Shown here one piece after another: positions 6,715-63,130 of a DNA stretch of 64,000 nt (positions within the stretch are counted from its first letter, which is position 1; each line of letters opens with the position of its first letter). This stretch comes from Bigelowiella natans CCMP2755 (lineage: Eukaryota > Protista > Cercozoa), in assembly GCA_000320545.1 (NCBI GenBank), contig ADNK01001892.1, positions 15,730 through 79,729 on the forward strand, given 5' to 3'. A program made the position numbers and the translations under genes. Under the pieces are notes generated by a model. It had not been told where the DNA came from. It did not search any database and saw only the letters and a list, made by a program, of their open reading frames with translations.

Positions 6715-7530
6715 TGGCAGGTGTTTGATGATGATGAGCTGGGTAATCTTACAACTGGAGGCTCATGTGAGTGTCGCTCCCCTCAAAATGTCAAGTGTAA
6801 TTACATCGAGACAAGGTGCATCAGCATGGAAAGTCTCCACGCAGCTAGAATGCCAATTTTTCAAATCCAGTCAGTCCTCACTGAAGCTGGTTCGAGGCAG
6901 TGCGTTTCGTGCTTTGCAAATGTCATGCAACATTTTGGAAGTGCAGTCCTTCATCACGTTTGTTTGTTTGATCGCATTTTCTTTGGTTGCACGTTTTGGA
7001 AGTGTGGTCCACCTTCAAGTCACTTTCTTTTTTTGTTTCTTTGCTCTTGTCAGGGGAGGATGTGCACGCGTCAGCACGTCTGATGCGATGAGCCCTGCTT
7101 CGCGTTCATTCAAGGTCATCCGTCGAAGTGCCGTGGCCGACGGACGCGAAAGAAACCCTCAAGTTTTCTTGGTGTTTCAGTTGATTGAGGAGGACACGGG
7201 TGAGTCAGCGTGCTGCCTTCTCGTTGAGATTCGAGTTGCAGGCACGTTGCACGTCGCTCCGCTGCACCACTCCAGCACTGCAGCCAAATCAAAGCCAAGT
7301 TCAATGCTTCTGCGTGCAGCCTTGTGCTCCTTTCGACCGCGTCATTGGAATCACTGCTTGCTTTCTTTCTTTCTTTCATTCCAGCATGAACGTTGTGTGA
7401 GCAGCGCGTGTTGCATGATTCGTGTTTGCTCCTGAATGTTGAAAGTGATTTTGACTCATTGTTGCCACGTGTCCTGCAGAAAACACGACCATGCACAAAC
7501 CTCTGGAAAAATGCTGTGGCTCGGTGCGTT
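6715..7530 (+). pseudogene. Probable relic of an intron-containing gene inside island 1
   Basis: Exon-like blocks bounded by AG/GT: about 6720-6766, 7054-7199 (..FLVFQLIEEDT, gtgagt donor) and 7385-7523 (HDSCLLLNVESDFDSLLPRVLQKTRPCTNLWKNAVAR). The TA-free part has no Tyr codons. Confidence 0.35.
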
Positions 7531-8450
7531 TCGGCACGCCTTGTGGCTTGCCAGCTGCAAGTGCCAGTCTGGCGGCAGCAGTGTTGTGCGTGCTGGCACA
7601 CGCTGGCACGCCTGGACACAGCAGTTCATTGTGTGCATCGCATGCAGTCATCTCGACTTTCAGTTTTCGCATCGCGTGCAAAAAAATCTTGCGTGCGCAT
7701 GCACATGGGCTTGTGTGTGCATTTGGACGTGATCAACTTTGATGCCAGTTGTCGCACCTTCGGTTTGTGCATTCATCGCTTGCGTGGGAGTTGGCATGCT
7801 GTCAATGTCCTTGTTGATTGTCTGAACTTGCTCAGCCTGCATGGCAGCAGGCGCGGTGCGATGATGCGACGCGGCATTGAAACCATTCGCATGCAGAACG
7901 GCCGCAGCCGGCTGTTGTCCTTGAACTCTTCGTCAAGGCAAGCTGCGTGCTTCGGAATGGGTGACGCTGATCGGTCAGCGTGCCGCGGTGGTGGATCTGA
8001 GGTGTCAGAGGTCATCAATTCTTGTGAAGCATGCATGCGCATGCAAGTGCAGGCTAGCAAACTGTCACTATCAGGCCAACAGGGCACCGCGCATTCCCCA
8101 TGCGCGCAACGACTCTTGCGCTAAAAAATGGCCGAACAAGCTAGGGCAGGGCACGGTGAAATTTGCATGCACGGTTGCTTGAATGATGATGAGACGTCTA
8201 GATCGTCTCAATGAGCGCTCTCTGGAATTTGAGCCCGTTTTGGCTGACATTTGCAGCAACCACAGAACCACCACAAAGTAGCAGAAACTAGCAGCAAACC
8301 AGCAATGATTAACGATGTCTTAGATGCAGTAACTCTTTGCAATTATGATGAAGACAAGTAACCATCGACACATCATCAACAGAGTGGACATTGCACTTTG
8401 GAAATGTTCCCATCCAACCTGTAAGCCGATGTTGCATGAAGGTGGTAAAA
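6848..8450. repeat. TpA-depleted island 1 (degenerate repeat or duplicated DNA)
   Basis: No TA dinucleotide in 6848-8054; rich in TG/CA with CpG retained; contains a 255-bp segment repeated in inverted orientation at 19198-19453. Confidence 0.8.
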
Positions 8451-17803: not shown

Positions 17804-18241
17804 GAAATGGTGGTGCTGCAGTGGGTGATTACATTTTCAAATCAATTGCTGAGAAAGACTAATTGGCGACATTTTGACTAGTTGAGTGCAGCACGCATTG
17901 GCATTCTCAATCATTCCCGTGCGTCCTCTCCTTGGACCACATCTAGCAGATGTCAACTTAAAATATGATTCATCCATTGATGCAATGATCTTCGCGTTTC
18001 ATTGTTCATCACCATGATCACTTCTAGACTTTCATGTCTAGGACTAGAGCAGATGTGCGCACATCTAGATGTAGATGCACTATAGCTCTATAGAGCGCAC
18101 GGTGTCTATCTGCATACATATGTGTGCCGACATATACATCGATAGAGTGGTTGAGCTTATGATTTCTGTATGGCGCTCGAACACCGAACTGCCAAATTTG
18201 GCACCGAATCTCATCGTTATAGCGTAGATTGTAGCATCGTA

Positions 18242-20300
18242 GGCAGCAGTCTGTGAAGTTGTTTCATTGATCGATGCATGGCATCGCAAGCGCAGCTAGG
18301 GTGCACGGCACGCACGTCATTGGTGCAATGCGAGATCGATTTCAAGCCTTGCATGACCAATCTAGCAATGCTCCAAGCGCTGTCCGCCAGCTGTGCACGT
18401 TCAGCGAACAAGATGTTGTTGATGTCGCCCATGCGCTCGCCTGCTGGCAATGAATGTCCATCTGGAACAAACTGTGAACACAGTGTGCATTGTGGCGCAC
18501 GCCAGCACGGCGCCACGATGCAGTTTGCCGCCCGACCACGACGAGCCCCCTGTTGGCCTGTGCTGGCCCGACAAGCTAGCAAGGCCGCATGCAAAAGTGC
18601 ACACGTGCAGCGTTGGACACGGCCAAGTGGCGCTCAGCGTGTCGCGACATGGCAAAGTGAAAAGCTCACTCACTTTGCGGAAGTCTCTCAGGAGTTTCGC
18701 GCATCGCGACATGGCTAGATGGCAGCGTGAAAAGCCATGTCGCGACATGGCAAAGTGAAAAGCCATGCGTCGTCGCACCTGCAACAACGATTCAGACACA
18801 ACTCATCAGAACTCAAAAGTCCAAGTGACACATTGAGATCAGAACTCAACTGCACAAGCAAGCAACCAAGCAACCAAGCACACTCAGAACTCAAACGACC
18901 AAGTGACATCAGAACTCAAACGTTCAAGTGACAAAGCAACTCAAGAACCAAGCAACAATGCAACTCAACGACTCATGCGGCTTCAGTTCTCAACACGAGA
19001 CCGCATTGCACCACGCCCAATGCTGCAACAATCGACAGCTGCACTCGATGCAGAACGAATCGGTTGCATGCGAGGGCGCACATTGCTGCAACAATCGACA
19101 GCCTGCACGTGACGCAGAACGAATCGGTTGCATGCAACAGTGCGTGTGCGTCTCAACTTCAACCCTGCGACACGCGTGCTTCTGCACACGCGCGCAGCAC
19201 CTCAGATCCATCACCGCGGCACGCTGACCGATCAGCGTCACCCATTCCGAAGCACGCAGCTTGCCTTGACGAAGAGTTCAAGGACAACAGCCCGGCTGCG
19301 GCCGTTCTGCATGCGAATGGTTTCAATGCCGCGTCGCATCATCGCACTGCGCCTGCTGCCATGCAGGCTGAGCAAGTTCAGACAATCAACAAGGACACTG
19401 ACAGCATGCCAACTCCCACGCAAGCGATGAATGCACAAACCGAAGGCGCGACAGCACGATGCATGTGATGATGTGCACAACGCATGTGACATGCACGTGT
19501 GCACGTGCGTGTGTCTGTTGTGTGATCGAACAAGGCGTTTCAATTGTGCAAATTGCACACTTGCACGATGCATGTGTGCACACATTCGATCATGCAAGAC
19601 ATCGATCCACCGCACATGCATGCTTTCACATTTTCGATGTTGTCGCACGCAAAAACTCGGTGATTTTCAAATGCATGCATGCATGAGCTTGGCTTGAACT
19701 TGACGCTCAGACGCCTGTCAGTCCACAGCTCAGACGAGTGCAGATGCAATGCGTGGTGGTGTGTGGACAACGCAACACTCCGGACACGTCACATTGCACC
19801 ATCCATGCAGCCATCCACACTGTGTGCCATTCAGCACAGCTAGCCATGCGTGCTGTGATTGTGATGGTGGCATGTGCCATCTTCATTTGACCGTGCGTGC
19901 TGCGCGCGCATGCAGGCGCGTTCCCCACCACTAGACCCTGACATCGATGGCTGAAACATCATGAACCAACAGATTCATGCAACGCATCAGCCCTGTAGCC
20001 GCTGCCATGCTGCACCACATGGTGCATTGCACAGCTACATGTGAGGATCACAATTGCGAACAAATTTAATTGATTGAGCGCGTCCGTCTCACCCTGACGG
20101 TGTTTGATTTGTCGATCCGAATTCACATTTGTCGCACACGCATGTGCAAGGTCACACATGTGCTCGCTATCGGTTAGCACATATTCAAGCATGAAATGTC
20201 CAAGCGCACTCAGCACTGCAGCCGGAGCGCACTCCACAACTTGTCACACCCATATCGCACGCGAAATTGCAACTCGCAATGAGCTTCCGATGGCGTCGCA
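18242..20300. mobile_element. TpA-depleted island 2; degenerate repetitive element of undetermined class
   Basis: Only six TA in 18242-19995, all in CTAG. Internal short direct repeats at 18640-18930 and 19020-19135. Shares 255 bp with island 1. No transposase or RT motif recognised. Confidence 0.6.
19198..19453 (-). repeat. Inverted dispersed copy of 7750-8004
   Basis: Manual alignment over about 255 bp shows 4 substitutions (all A/G) and one 1-bp indel, about 98% identity. Confidence 0.95.
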
Positions 20301-20845: not shown

Positions 20846-22700
20846 TCAGATTTTTCTTTGATCGGAAGAAAGCTGAGATGTCCAGCAGATTGTTTGATTC
20901 ACAGCAGCAATGTCAGAACAGCTGCGATTATTCCAAAGTTGATTCAGTTCCATGTCCTTCGGAATGTTATGACTCCTATTTGCAAGGCTACTGCCCCTTG
21001 AAGTTTTCTTACCAACAGAGGAGAAAATCTCGGGGGGGTCAGAGCTGCTACTTGCTATTTGTTTCTGGAGTTTCTTTAGCGTTGACTGAATTTGAGAGAT
21101 GTATTCTCGATTTGCTTCCGGACTGATGCCTTTGACCATGATACGTCCCACACGTTCGGTTTCATTTCCATTACTGCTTAGCCCTTTTTTCTCGCGACTC
21201 CGTTCTTCCTTATCTTCTTTTGGCGCACAAACCACACGGTGAGAACAATAATAATAATAGGAGAAGCATCCTCAAACCGCTGACAATTCCTCCAATGAGA
21301 CCAAAAACAATGTAACCAAGATAGAAAGTCCATCTCTTCGCTGCGTTTCAAAGTAGGTGCATTGTAAGGATTACAGGCGGAAAAGTAGTCCTCAAACGAC
21401 GTGTTGGAATCTGTTTTCATGATGCATCATCCATCTTTGAGCCCCGAATAAATGTCTGTAAATTGGGTTGACTCATCTTTCGACGAAATGAATTATTATC
21501 AGCAAATGTCTGTAAATTGGGTTGACTCATCTTTCGACGAAATGAATTATTATCAGCAAATGTCTGTAAATTGGGTTGACTCATCTTTCGACGAAATGAA
21601 TTATTATCAGCAAATGTCTGTAAATTGGGTTGACTCATCTTTCGACGAAATGAATTATTATCAGCAAATGTCTGTAAATTGGGTTGACTCATCTTTCGAC
21701 GAAATGAATTATTATCAGCAAATGTCTGTAAATTGGGTTGACTCATCTTTCGACGAAATGAATTATTATCAGCATATCCCATCCAATTCCAGAAAGAAGC
21801 TTCCGAAATTAGTGCCAGTGTTGGAAAATTATAAAGTATTTGCAGCGTGGAACAGTAGTAAGATCAGAATACTCAAGCCTAGAGAGTTCTAGGCCCACTC
21901 GAATCTAAGTATTGCTCACATGAATATTGCATCGTAGTCCTCCTGACATGTTCTGTTCCTAAAATGATGAAAGTAACACTTCATATTTGCATCGGTAGCC
22001 AGGCCTGGGGGCCTCCAATCATTTTGCGTACAGCTGAAGAGGAAATCAAGTGTAGGATCATAAAAGTAATCTCGATAGGGGAAAAACCGTAAAATTAGGC
22101 AATCCGATGACGAATGAGTGTTTAGCCCAAGAGTCTTCATAAGATGTTGGGACTGCTTGCACGTCGATAGTATAATTGACTCGTTCATCCATTTTGGCAA
22201 ATACCACACCCATGTCATAAACGAGCTGAATAACGAGCTGAATATCGATTTCTATTCCCGTTTCTAAATCGTTAGCCTTTCCCAGCATCATAATCCTCCT
22301 TTGTAAGTTTGACCTGCTTTGCAACACAAGTTCACTACTATCGTATAGATATATAGACCCCTAAGAACCGAGCGAAAGGAGGTTTCATCATCCCATCTAT
22401 TTGAGATTATTTTTGACTTGACTATCGGCCAACCCATCAGTATTTCCTCACAAATTAAGTCTTCGGTAAAATTCATAGCCTCCAATTTGGACTTGTCAAT
22501 AACTGTTGAGGATTCTTTCCAGAATCAAAGAGCGAACCGACTTTAGAAATCCCAGGTTGGCGGACGACGATCGTGAAGGCGACCATTTTAAGAGCATAAT
22601 AAACGGCTTAGCCGACGACAATAACGATTGCAAGGAAACTAAACACGATCGTCATTATCGATCCATGTCGGACATTAGAGATTTTTTCGCTCCTTGATTT
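20846..22700 (-). pseudogene. Interrupted ORF fragments; possible pseudogene of a type II membrane protein
   Basis: Protein-like fragments in shifting frames: MCFPKSR..IMTIVFSFLAIVIVVG*, LEAMNFTEDLICEEILMGW, FWNWMGYADNNS, DFLSWLHCFWSHW. In-frame stops are present and I found no consistent GT-AG structure. Confidence 0.3.
21450..21773. repeat. Perfect tandem repeat, 6 x 54 bp
   Basis: Unit AAATGTCTGTAAATTGGGTTGACTCATCTTTCGACGAAATGAATTATTATCAGC starts at 21450, 21504, 21558, 21612, 21666 and 21720. Confidence 0.97.
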
Positions 22701-43249: not shown

Positions 43250-44045
43250 GTGGAAAAACTTTTTATGGCGCATGCAACAACATTCCGAGGTGTGCCATGA
43301 GATCACAAAAGTAGTTCAAACACCTGTCTTCCACCAATGTGGTGTCATCAGAGGTTTGTGTCTTTTTGAAAGGCAGTGAAAAATTTCGAGTCCTTGTGAG
43401 TGATTCAATTCCCAGTGGGCAAATGATTGATGAGTTTGCAATCATGTCATCATCGAAATATCATTGCCTCATTTGGATTGCACCCTAATGTCCACAGTAC
43501 AAGATGTTGAGCTAGCTCTCGGCGCAAACTTGCTGCATCTGGAGGTGTGTGCATCAGCGCAACAAACTGTGGAGTGCATGAGCTAATGGACATCTGATCC
43601 ATGATGACTGACCGCAACGTAGCAATGCAAGCGAGTGATGGGATGAATCGCAAGCATGCCTCGAACAACTCAGATCTGGACGTCTTCATCTGAGTTTGAT
43701 CCATGCTTCTAGCTAGCTAGCTAGCTAGCTCTGGAGCTAGGCTTCGCTAGTTCGATGTGGATGTGCGTTTGCAGACGTCGTACATGCCGTGCACGTGGTC
43801 AACACAAGAACAGTCCTGACAAATCACATGGCTAGACAGGCTAGCAGGCGCACAACCAACTAGCTAGCTAGCTGTTGGATGTCCAGCTAGCCAGGTGCAG
43901 CTGTGGACACCGCCTCTGAACCGGAACATGGCCAGTCAACGTGGACGCTGCACGCGTTGCAGCAATTTGTGTTCATTGAGTCCATTGCAATCAAATTGCC
44001 ATGGGTCTCCATTGTTGCTCGTGCCACTGTGTTGCCATGCATGAA

Positions 44046-44079
<34 letters not shown>

Positions 44080-44600
44080 GATGTGATCGCCAGCTCCAGC
44101 TTGTCGGCTTGACTGGAAGAGGCCAGCAGTGATTGCAGGAGCAGGCACACCAGCACAACTTGTCAGCTCTGAGCTAGCTGACTGGACGAGCGCCACACAA
44201 TTCACTTCACAGCTCTCGTGATCTGTTGACAGGCTCGTCTCTTGGTTCGTTTGGCCAAGAGCTGTGTGCCAGCGCTCACGTTGCCCACAAGGATGCAATG
44301 CTGCGCTCAGGTCAGCAACCACGCGTCTGCTTCTGGCTGCACTGCTGAACTGGTGCAAGCAGCGTCGCTGTCAAGAAAGTGGCACACACACACACACCAA
44401 CGCCCAGAACGGCAGCGCAGGCTGGCAGGTGTTGTCTGCATGGCTGCCAGGCTGGCTGGCTAGCTGTGTGGCTCTGGAGCTGGCCTTGCCCAGGTGCTGA
44501 CAAAGCAAGAGTTCAAAGATTCAAGTTTTGTGTTCATTTCTACGATGAAAATGGTCGCGTGAAATGAGATTGTCGCAGGGCAAAAATGCAGGAGAAAGAG
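43250..44600. repeat. TpA-depleted island 3
   Basis: All eight TA in 43783-44540 lie in CTAG; (CTAG)n runs at about 43717-43750 and 43860-43871; partial depletion on the left flank. Confidence 0.8.
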
Positions 44601-44900: not shown

Positions 44901-45905
44901 ATGGGCAATAAAATCCTAAAAAAGACGGACTTTGATGGTAGATACTCTACTCATGAAGTCCTTGGAAGAGGTTCGTTTGCTACTGTAAAGCGGGCAGTGC
45001 GAAAGAAGGACAAAAAAGAATTGGCTGTAAAAATCATAAAGAAAACGAAGCTAAAACAAGAAGAACTTAAGATTGTCCACGATGAGGTGAAGATAATGAA
45101 TAGAATTTATCATCCTAATTGTGTAAAATTAGAAGAAATATTCGAGACTAACAAAAAGCTTTACCTCGTCATGGAGATTCTGAGTGGCGGAGAGCTCTTC
45201 GATCGCATTGTTGCTAAGGGCAGTTTTTCCGAAAAGGAAGCCTCCGGAGTCACCAAAGCTGTAGCTTTAGCATTGAAATACCTACATAACATTGGAGTAG
45301 TTCACAGGGACTTGAAACCTGAAAATCTCATATACGCCAACCATAGAAATGACTCCCAGATTAAAATTACGGATTTTGGATTGGCAAAGTTGAAGCCAAA
45401 TGGATCCTCTATGAACACGGCATGCGGAACGCCTGGATACGTTGCACCAGAGGTCTTACGAAAACAAAAATACACTGAAGCTGTTGATGTGTGGAGTCTA
45501 GGTGTCATTCTCTATATTTTATTGTGTGGATTTCCGCCCTTCTATCACGAAAATACCGGTGCCTTGTACAAGCAAATAAAGTCTGGTGACTACGATTTTC
45601 CGGATCCATATTGGAAAGATATCACTGATTCTGCGAAAGATTTGATAAAAAAAATGCTGACTGTGGATCCAAAATCACGAATCACAATTCAAAACGTACT
45701 AGCTCATCCCTGGATCAGTGGAGATGCTGCTTCAACAAGGCGTTTAGGAGCAGAGCACTCAATACAACTAAGAAAGCTCCAAGCCCGGCGAACCCTTCGT
45801 AGAGTCGTTCAGCATGTGATTGCCGTCAACATTTTCTCAAAATGCCTTGAGAACTCAACAAGTGAATCATCTTCTTCAAAGGACAAAATAATGGATGAAA
45901 GTTAA
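44901..45905 (+). CDS. CAMK1: Ca2+/calmodulin-dependent protein kinase I-like Ser/Thr kinase; intron-free CDS
   Basis: GRGSFATV, AVK, HRDLKPEN, DFG and GTPGYVAPE motifs, plus a C-terminal CaM-binding-like helix (RKLQARRTLRRVVQHVIAV). Likely start is MGNK at 44901; a possible 5'UTR intron lies at 44848-44893. Confidence 0.95.
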   Translation: MGNKILKKTDFDGRYSTHEVLGRGSFATVKRAVRKKDKKELAVKIIKKTKLKQEELKIVHDEVKIMNRIYHPNCVKLEEIFETNKKLYLVMEILSGGELFDRIVAKGSFSEKEASGVTKAVALALKYLHNIGVVHRDLKPENLIYANHRNDSQIKITDFGLAKLKPNGSSMNTACGTPGYVAPEVLRKQKYTEAVDVWSLGVILYILLCGFPPFYHENTGALYKQIKSGDYDFPDPYWKDITDSAKDLIKKMLTVDPKSRITIQNVLAHPWISGDAASTRRLGAEHSIQLRKLQARRTLRRVVQHVIAVNIFSKCLENSTSESSSSKDKIMDES

Positions 45906-45936: not shown

Positions 45937-46249
45937 ATAGAATGATGATTAGCTTTGTAAGGAATATGGTCAATTGGACATGCAGTCAACTTAAATTGTG
46001 TCGACATTTCAAAAAAGGTCATTCCAGAAGCTCTATTTTTCAGGATGAGTACGACTCTATTGGTGGAAAAATTGCTACTAATTTTTCAATTAATCTTTCT
46101 TTTGCATGCTTTGCAAGATGAAGGTCCTGCTTCGAAGAAAGGTTTTGAGTCACATATTTTGAACGCACTGGTCTTGAGCATGCAACAACATCAAGAACAT
46201 CATCGACCTAGCAACCAATGCACTGAAAGCACTAGTGCAATCCTTGGCG

Positions 46250-46950
46250 CAACTATCTTGTTCCGAAAACGTGCCAGCAGGGCCTTCAGGTCCCTGGCTT
46301 GAGTGAAGTCCTTTTCTGTCCAATGAAGGCATGATAGCATGTGCTAGTGTGTGAATCAACCAGGCCACATTTGCCTCAAATTTCACGTGCAGCACAAAGC
46401 AGCGCGCATTTGAACAGAACATGCTAGCATGTCTAGATGTGTGCGTGATGACTCACTTGCTAGCTTGCTCTAGTGCTAGCTTGGTGCATCTAACTAGCTA
46501 GGCATGTGAGGACATGAAAAGCACACCTGTCTAGCTGTGCCTACTTTGTTGTGCTTGTCAACTACAGACATGCACATGTGTTCTTGCGCGCACACGCTAG
46601 CACGCGCCAGCTAGCTAGCTAGCCAGAGCCCTCAGGTCCCTATCACATCACTTGAACACACGCATGTGCACGTGGCAATCAATCTAGCAATGTCCGCTAG
46701 TCCGCATCAACCATCAACGTCTAGAACGTGCTAACAGCGTGCATGCAGAGCGTTTGCTAGTTTGGCAAGCCTGCACAATCTAGCAATGTGGACGGTGCCT
46801 TTGTAGCTAGGTAGACACTCATCGCCCAACTGACACTTTGAATTCAACACATGCTAGCATGCTTATTTTGTCACAAAGCAGTTCGTTGTGTTCAAAATGC
46901 TTTTGTCGCACAAACTTACGTGGAAGTACATGGAGATTGCTAACACCAAA
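46250..46950. repeat. TpA-depleted, CTAG-rich island 4
   Basis: In about 46420-46860 the TA dinucleotides I saw are in CTAG, CTA[ACT] or [AGT]TAG contexts. Confidence 0.7.
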
Positions 46951-47001: not shown

Positions 47002-47386
47002 TCATTGGTCTGAGATGAGAGAATTCCAAGCATCTTCAAATGCTTGGGTTTCAGCGCGGTTATCATTAGATGCTTCCTTCTCTCGAGAAAAGGGTGACCT
47101 TGATGATGATTGTGACAAAATCATATTTTTTCCATAGTCATCATCTTTCTCCGAGTTGCGGTTGATTCGCTCATAACTTCCATACGTATTCCTTTGGAAC
47201 TGAGAACTCTTTGTTTCCTGCAGTAACTGATCCATGTTTTTGGTGTACTGACGATGATGCTTAAAAGCTTGTTGGTACACCTTCTTCTTTTTTGTCGAGT
47301 CTTTAGAGATTGCTTCTTGTAATTGATCCTCGCCAGTCGATTTTTCAATTAAATTTGCAACGCGTTCCAACAGAAAGTCAGTGCCC

Positions 47387-61949: not shown

Positions 61950-63130
61950 AGTGCACCAGTGTTGCATGGAAAATGTGATCTAAATTCCCTACATTGCATT
62001 TTCTCCCAGCGTCTTGAATCGAAAACGGAACCCTAATTGATTGCTCTGCTGGGCGCGCGCCTAGCGTAGGTGGCACGGCAAATGACATCGTTTGCCTGTG
62101 AGTGTTGTTGCGTTTGTGATTGTGCATGTAACACACCAGTGCACGCATAGCTAGCAGCTACCGGTCTAGCGGTGTGGTGTGCGTGCCCGCCACTCTGTTT
62201 GCGCTGTCATGCGTGTGCCTAGCTAGCTAGATGCATCTCTAGATCTAGAGATCAACACGCAGCATCAAAGCAGGCAACCGTGCAGATGTGTGTGCATGCA
62301 AATGCAAGGAATGATGCACGTCTAGCTAGCTAGCTTGCAAGCTAGCAAGCTCCAGAGCTAACAAGCTGCACGTGCGCCTACGTGGCATGCTAGCATGGCT
62401 AGTAGGTCTAGAGGTGCAGGCGCTTGCGATGTTTGTTGTTGCATTCTGCATTGCATTCTAGCATTGCTTGCATTCCGCTAGCCACATGTGGAACTTTGGC
62501 ACTGCCATGGACTGCATGCTAGCATGAACATGGATGCACGCACTGTGTCCAGATTTCAACATCACTTGAGCAAGCCAGCTAGCCGCCGCTAGCTCCAGAG
62601 CTTTTTCCACACCACAGTGTAGCCATGGTGCTATGTCGCTAGCTCCAGAGCACAATCAGTGTGCTGCGGGCGTAGCCACCGCAGCTAATCTAGAGCTTTG
62701 GCTAGCAGCGCTGCCGTAGCTGCATGAATGGCTAGCTCGCCAGTGCATGTGTGCACACGAATGCATGAAACATGCATGCTAGCCAGGCCTGCAGCTACGT
62801 GCATGCACATGTCCCGCATGCATGCATGTCTACAAATGTGCGCTGTCTGGACTGCTATGTGCTAGTACAGTCTGTCACCTAGTGCGACGTACAACATCAA
62901 TTCGCAAACAGACGACATGGAATCTGGAGAATTGATGAATTATGCGAAAGTGACATGCTAGCATGTAACAGCTACATGAGGATGACAATTGAACAAATTT
63001 AGTTCATTAATCACATCCATCTTGCAACTACCGTAACAATTAACAATTAAGATTTTGCATTTTATTAGAGTCAAATGACACAAATGAAAAGCGCGCTAGC
63101 AAAACTAGAAAAGCCATACGATGATCGATC
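61950..63130. repeat. TpA-depleted, CTAG-rich island 5
   Basis: Most TA in 62040-62460 are in CTAG, the rest almost all in CTA[AC] or [AG]TAG; recurrent motif GCTAGCTCCAGAGC. Confidence 0.75.

Follow-up and report, generated by a model that had tools for sequence, protein, structure and literature searches.

Hypermutation of TpA has been described in the genome of Bigelowiella natans: mutation-accumulation lines yielded 231 de novo A>G/T>C changes, nearly all at TpA, with a mutation rate about 1000 times normal in a region of integrated giant virus and in a virophage region, while 124 clusters poor in TpA and rich in CpA+TpG were counted genome-wide along with 324 gene models low in TA, and an ADAT2/TadA-like adenine deaminase was proposed as the enzyme, with Bn78255 as candidate (Mettrop et al. 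2026, doi 10.64898/2026.01.13.699255). Here we describe a 64-kb stretch of DNA from the same species (contig ADNK01001892.1; hereafter the window, in whose coordinates all positions are given) and, within it, a segment at 18242-19995, referred to as island 2, in which TpA has been erased except within the tetranucleotide CTAG. We consider it rather probable that this CTAG-only pattern results from TpA hypermutation that is averse to a G on the 3' side of the target A, together with a supply of CTAG by insertion. Like the published regions, island 2 has lost TpA, gained CpA and TpG and risen in GC; unlike them, it is only ~1.75 kb long and holds no recognisable viral or transposon protein. The hypermutation itself is already published, and island 2 is a further, smaller instance of it. 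Unreported are the 3'-G bias, which is nevertheless present in Table S2 of the preprint, and the stereotyped CTAG insertion; the main text of the preprint mentions neither the bases flanking TpA nor CTAG, and does not describe CTAG insertions (doi 10.64898/2026.01.13.699255).

Repeat-induced point mutation (RIP), known from Neurospora and other fungi, is likewise regional, dinucleotide-specific, strand-symmetric and near-saturating, and also leaves islands with sharp borders. Its direction is the opposite one: RIP turns CpA into TpA, whereas here TpA is absent and CpA/TpG are enriched about 2-fold. Nor does the repeat dependence of RIP find support at this locus, where the sole duplicate was copied after the erasure (see below); the lineage is another one and so, presumably, is the chemistry.

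Island 2 contains six TA dinucleotides where its base composition predicts 89.5. Their T residues stand at 18297, 18363, 18577, 18716, 19841 and 19932, all six within CTAGs (starting at 18296, 18362, 18576, 18715, 19840 and 19931), and the run from 18716 to 19841 is free of TA over 1125 bp; on these counts an exact recount agrees with a first-pass annotation of the window. In the undepleted 52 kb of the window, which serve throughout as the background (or "outside"), CTAG makes up 3.0% of all NTAN, and the chance of finding six CTAGs in six is p ~7e-10 at that frequency, or ~1e-7 if C and G are taken at their frequencies in the island. The dinucleotide ratio rho_TA is 0.00-0.18 in the island, the observed/expected values of CA and TG are 1.5-2.1, and GC is 52-58% compared with ~37% in the surroundings. 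The boundary had been described as sharp. This holds for the left edge, where the TA-normal flank at 18060-18241 carries 19 TA in 182 bp; the right boundary is gradual, rho_TA staying at 0.29-0.55 until ~21500, i.e. over ~1.5 kb, and the end at 19995 was placed just ahead of a GTAG at 19996. The island is non-coding: nine of its open reading frames (ORFs) gave no Pfam match over the cut-off and one weak match under it, and none of 29 ORFs in or near the islands of the window exceeded the curated cut-offs. Long ORFs in the islands follow from the loss of TAA and TAG stops; the window is otherwise nearly without long ORFs, and Rfam and tRNA scans of it gave no matches.

Island 2 is the product of the published TpA->TpG/CpA (A:T->G:C) hypermutation, driven to saturation, although the direction rests on indirect evidence. 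With no unmutated ancestor in the window, polarity is taken from the published data, from the variants of the CTAG insertions described below, among which only CCAG and CTGG are over-represented, and from an in-silico conversion that matches the observed 4-mer densities. When every TA of the local background is converted to TG/CA in silico, DTGH+DCAH (H, any base but G; D, any base but C) reach 157 per kb, and the TA-free cores of the window contain 129-170 per kb, those of islands 1 and 2 having 139-170. The published definition of a hypermutated region requires a Rho_TpA of at most 0.43 combined with a Rho_CpA+TpG of at least 1.52 in at least three consecutive 1-kb windows (doi 10.64898/2026.01.13.699255). 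Both 18501-19500 (Rho_TpA 0.04, Rho_CpA+TpG 1.67) and 19001-20000 (0.06 and 1.96) pass these thresholds, but the number of consecutive qualifying 1-kb windows at island 2 depends on the frame of the scaffold, being one or two in 18 of 20 frames and three in the other two. Island 2 therefore probably went unlisted among the published clusters, and since islands of this size are probably below the cluster threshold, the process is suggested to touch more of the genome than the 124 clusters.

Within island 2, the segment 19198-19453 is an inverted (minus-strand) copy of 256 bp of positions 7750-8004, which belong to island 1. The copies have sharp ends and are 98% identical, differing at four positions (A/G) and by a 1-bp indel; both are TA-free and the same at each CA/TG, and none of the four transitions makes a TA. 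By this alignment, the segment was duplicated after the erasure of TA. The island also contains a TA-free tandem repeat of 64 bp (19014-19135, 1.9 copies).

The outcome in which only CTAG is left follows equally from a rule in which a G at +1 of the target A is avoided and from one in which a C at -2 is avoided, and the two are separated by the products of mutation, not by the survivors. The former predicts CTGH+DCAG from the half-sites (CTAH and DTAG), the latter CCAH+DTGG. In the background these classes number 940 and 974 (ratio 0.97 +/- 0.10, SD). The pooled cores hold 146 and 94, a ratio that none of 2000 background chunks of core size reaches, and each core alone, as well as all three half-site types, leans to CTGH+DCAG. 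From the excess above background, 82 vs 28, about 75% of half-site conversions would have gone by the TAH route and about 25% by the TAG route that a strict rule forbids. The same bias appears independently in the de novo mutations, for which we counted by hand the trinucleotides of Table S2, collapsed by strand: the target A is followed by A in 74, T in 81, C in 57 and G in 23 (n=235), where G at +1 occupies ~20% of strand contexts in the background of the window and would occupy more in a partly depleted region. A 3' G thus disfavours mutation without full sparing, and we estimate that it lowers the rate ~2.5-4 fold. A C at +1 (57/235, against ~21% of background contexts) shows no clear preference; a TAC preference suggested by product ratios per context was set aside, since (TA)n runs also yield TGC/GCA. 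Four T>C changes in ATG or ATT contexts are listed in Table S2, whereas the text places all at TpA (doi 10.64898/2026.01.13.699255).

The first-pass annotation had inferred from the six CTAGs that A in TAG is spared, a TA being then protected on both strands only within this palindrome. The direction of its rule stands, G being the least favoured +1 base and the products (146 vs 94) fitting it better than a rule based on C at -2. Its absoluteness does not, with 23 of 235 de novo mutations at TAG/CTA and about a quarter of half-site conversions by the forbidden route. Similarly, the predicted order of retention, CTAG above half-sites above DTAH, is found in the window at every depth of depletion, the retention in depleted zones relative to background being 3.5, 0.31 and 0.19, respectively, but the gain of half-sites over DTAH is only 1.6-fold (Fisher p=5e-4), and GTAC and TTAA are on a par with half-sites. 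CTAG therefore cannot be accounted for by a multiplicative rule: a per-strand effect of 2.5-4 fold leads one to expect CTAG thinned, not enriched. As regards the background counts, CTAC/GTAG is the second commonest NTAN class of the 52 kb (16% of all TA), likely because of trinucleotide runs of the (GTA)n/(TAC)n type, and this abundance inflates the half-site counts of any expectation based on the background.

ADAR and ADAT2/TadA enzymes also convert A to G and require or prefer a T/U 5' of the target A; a T at -1 is obligatory in the islands as it is in the published data, and the anticodon loop that TadA/ADAT2 read is U-A-C-G, a motif with C at +1, for which no clear preference is seen here. 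The 3' side differs. ADAR prefers its edited A to be followed by G, and UAG is the favoured site of fungal ADAT2/3 mRNA editing; in the present data G is the rarest base at +1 and the products go against the TAG route; moreover, the substrate would here be genomic DNA, directly or indirectly. This preference for T-A-H over T-A-G, opposite to that of ADAR and fungal ADAT2/3 mRNA editing, offers a biochemical criterion for candidate enzymes.

What sets the CTAGs of the depleted zones apart is their flanks. We compared 90 CTAGs within these zones with 120 elsewhere in the window, and exact direct repeats of 4 nt on both sides (XXXX-CTAG-XXXX, hereafter scars) were found in 38 of the former and none of the latter. 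With (CTAG)n arrays excluded, the count is 31 of 90, where other 4-mers, taken as the control, give 1.2% (p=4e-36). All 38 lie in TA-depleted zones, over the spans 17878-18722, 43713-43898, 46344-46865 and 62166-63116. The insert is CTAG throughout, with a duplication of exactly 4 bp and no further length or sequence standing out. Among the duplicated targets are CATG (five times), CAAT (three times), CAAG (twice) and CAGG, and together the targets give a weakly palindromic consensus, M-N-N-K (CWWG-like). CTAG itself fits M-N-N-K, so that the arrays (CTAG)3-5 resemble repeated insertion into earlier scars.

Three of the six CTAGs of island 2 have exact 4-nt repeats on both flanks: CAAT-CTAG-CAAT (18358-18369), CAAG-CTAG-CAAG (18572-18583) and ATGG-CTAG-ATGG (18711-18722). 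The last is clearly an 8-bp insertion, because two empty paralogous sites are present nearby (18626-18672 and 18728-18770), which read TCGCGAC-ATGG-CAAAGTG where the filled site reads TCGCGAC-ATGG-CTAG-ATGG-CAGCGTG. A fourth, ACCA-CTAG-ACCC (19927-19938), is probably an older scar with one flank mismatch. The remaining two lack a recognisable duplication: CTAG at 18296-18299 (flanks GCAG and GGTG) may have survived from the ancestor or be an old scar, and the other is at 19840-19843 (flanks ACAG and CCAT). The flanks thus indicate that at least half of the CTAGs of island 2 (3-4 of six) are arrivals rather than ancestral TAs, and that a large share, in our reading most, of those in the depleted zones were inserted. 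The first-pass view of the six as surviving TAs accordingly fails: at least 3-4 are 8-bp insertions, CTAG is enriched 3.5-fold where other TAs are lost, and CTAG itself decays. To derive the specificity of an enzyme from the observation that CTAG is spared is therefore misleading.

As to the origin of the scars, our best guess, offered with modest confidence, is the excision footprint of a cut-and-paste element with self-complementary CTAG ends. The known footprints of such elements (TA-CA-TG-TA of Tc1; the rejoined palindromic 4-nt overhangs of piggyBac) share with these scars a constant palindromic insert between target duplications, a weakly palindromic target, as is usual for transposases, and recurrent nearby insertions, including those into earlier footprints that give (CTAG)n. 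They differ in that here the footprint is invariant, the 64 kb hold no parent element and 38 of 38 scars are in hypermutated zones. To our knowledge, no transposon superfamily that can be named combines a non-specific 4-bp duplication with a CTAG remnant, and a literature search for CTAG footprints or for 4-bp-duplication elements with such ends returned nothing relevant. Two other origins were rejected. CTAG cannot be created by the TA hypermutation, because its C precedes T and so has no TpA-type T->C origin; and double nicking of EndoV type where a TpA has been doubly deaminated would lead to duplicated NTAN in the form of TG/CA products rather than to XXXX on either side of a constant CTAG.

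The scars also record the fate of CTAG after its arrival. In both flank copies of most scars the same CA/TG is found, so CTAG was inserted into DNA already converted. Decayed forms, XXXX-CCAG-XXXX (six) and XXXX-CTGG-XXXX (three), amount to 9/90 vs 1.2% in the control (p=1.8e-6), whereas XXXX-TTAG-XXXX and XXXX-CTAA-XXXX were never seen. One of the decayed scars is within island 2 (CACG-CCAG-CACG, 18498-18509, CTAG -> CCAG). Decayed scars outnumber intact ones in island 1 (two vs none) and island 3 (three vs 0-1), and the CTAG-rich zones have ~34 intact to 3 decayed. CTAG is therefore slow to decay, not immune. Two scars, at 18065 (ACAT/ATGT) and 43832 (ATGG/ACAG), have CA in one flank copy and TG at the matching position of the other with CTAG intact, so that the TAs in the two flanks must have mutated independently once the insertion was in place, leaving CTAG unaltered; by our own rough estimate, ~0.2 such scars are expected by chance. 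Under assumptions on ancestral composition and scar ages, CTAG may decay at very roughly 0.08-0.35 of the ordinary TA rate.

In the scheme that we favour, two separate causes, context and supply, would underlie the CTAG-only pattern. TpA->TpG/CpA hypermutation would have driven island 2 to saturation; a base pair would be less often mutated with G as the outer neighbour of its A (TAG, or CTA when read on the opposite strand), and only the palindrome CTAG has this poor context on both strands, which makes it the slowest-decaying TA; and an insertion of the form XXXX -> XXXX-CTAG-XXXX, mostly into TA-free DNA, would replenish it. Several points weigh against this scheme. In the window blastn found no unmutated ancestor of island 2, and the GC (52-57%) and CpG (~1.0) of the islands exceed the values obtained by converting the local background. 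The ancestor was probably a sequence unlike that background, and the excess hints at a different origin of the island DNA; with an ancestral composition likely off background, the retention ratios and rates above are only rough. The de novo contexts were compared with the background of this window, not with the hypermutable regions from which they come, and TAG (4) and CTA (19) differ among them, though these are equivalent events on opposite strands. The age of a scar is inseparable from its resistance, and much of what is seen could follow from late arrival by itself. Finally, within 64 kb no inverted-repeat element of the form CT...AG with a 4-bp duplication was detected, the only hits being microsatellite artefacts, and a footprint without variants is not what end-joining repair usually leaves.

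Two alternatives survive this comparison best, although we regard neither as likely. In the first, the scars come from an undescribed mobile element or nuclease that acts specifically in DNA marked for TpA hypermutation, CTAG being the TA that the mutator handles worst. The ends of the element would then be adapted to evade the host mutator, or insertion and mutation would share one defence pathway. To this reading we give a small chance. The second, for which the odds are about equally low, is one of timing only: CTAG has no resistance at all, hypermutation is over, and the 8-bp CTAG insertion has been the sole later source of TA. Matching CA/TG in both flanks of most scars, TA-free copies of the empty site and an island already TA-free when the 256-bp segment was duplicated all fit this account. 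It does not explain why the 3'-G bias emerges independently from de novo data and product spectra, and the nine scars decayed from TA to CA/TG imply a process active after insertion, as do the two scars that kept CTAG though TAs 1-4 bp away were converted. In addition, no TA generated by ordinary C>T mutation persists at ~700 CA/TG sites over 3.5 kb of cores, which suggests ongoing purging.

Less probable still are two readings in which the neighbours or the motif do all the work. That A in TAG is never mutated and the six CTAGs are all ancestral survivors would agree with the confinement of the core TAs to CTAG, with the rarity of G as +1 base de novo and with the bias of products to CTGH/DCAG, but we hold it to be quite improbable. 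It is contradicted by 23 de novo mutations at TAG/CTA, by the ~25% of products from the forbidden route, by nine decayed scars in 90, by a CTAG density 3.5-13 times that of the background and by the at least 3-4 inserted CTAGs of six, one with empty paralogous sites. Similarly improbable is a protection specific to CTAG and apart from the neighbour preference, such as N6-adenine methylation or a bound protein that blocks deamination; no methyltransferase came to light in the window, where no search was aimed at one. Such protection would account for a retention far above what a 2.5-4 fold effect of the +1 base, applied multiplicatively, would give, and for the CTAG density of the zones, which is still ~1.5-1.6x background after removal of recognisable scars; however, CTAG decays in the deepest cores, and old scars no longer recognised could supply the excess. 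It is very improbable that the TA-free, palindrome-rich blocks are under selection for a function, for instance as terminators or as intergenic boundary elements, rather than being mutational debris, despite the position of one of them directly 3' of a gene and ahead of a minus-strand ORF, as in-silico TA conversion alone matches the 4-mer densities of the cores, de novo hypermutation has been demonstrated experimentally, scar targets are variable and the islands share no alignable sequence bar one recent 256-bp copy.

The pattern extends beyond island 2: CTAG stands at both ends of six of the window's eight longest TA-free runs, among them the top four (1209, 1125, 287 and 286 bp). The longest is the core of island 1 (6847-8056), with decayed scars at 7272 and 7603 and no intact one. 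The core of island 3 (43889-44462) has only the TAs of CTAGs at 44175 and 44460; the CTAG that bounds it at 43887 belongs to a scar, and decayed scars are at 44150, 44422 and 44447. Three TA-poor zones are rich in CTAG, at 29-36 per kb vs 2.3 per kb in the background: zone a (43500-43888; 36 per kb, with (CTAG)n arrays and scars), zone b (46190-46870; 32 per kb, 16 exact scars) and zone c (62040-62960; 29 per kb, 11 exact scars). A blastn comparison within the window (word size 9) revealed no un- or less-mutated paralogue of the islands, only the 256-bp TA-free copy and low-complexity matches. CpG observed/expected is ~0.85-1.1 in islands 1 and 2, 0.3-0.9 in the surroundings and 0.47-0.64 in island 3; islands 1 and 2 either are DNA of a different origin or have escaped a CpG depletion acting elsewhere.

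The one clear gene of the window is an intronless CaM-kinase (CaMK) gene on the plus strand (44901-45905), the product of which is identical at 305 of 306 positions to jgi|Bigna1|58021 (fgenesh1_pm.47) of B. natans and 95% identical to a B. longifila protein. By this match the window is assigned to the nuclear DNA of B. natans, and to scaffold 47 according to the name of the JGI model. Zone b lies directly 3' of this gene, as a block rich in CTAG, CATG and TGCA between its stop codon and a minus-strand ORF (47002-47370), the two being arranged tail-to-tail. To the right of the shoulder of island 2, a perfect tandem repeat of 54 bp (21450-21774, 6.0 copies, 100% identity) is open in both strands and so gives repetitive pseudo-ORFs. 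A (CAT)14 microsatellite occupies 44040-44082 within the TA-free core of island 3, and many similar runs are scattered across the window.

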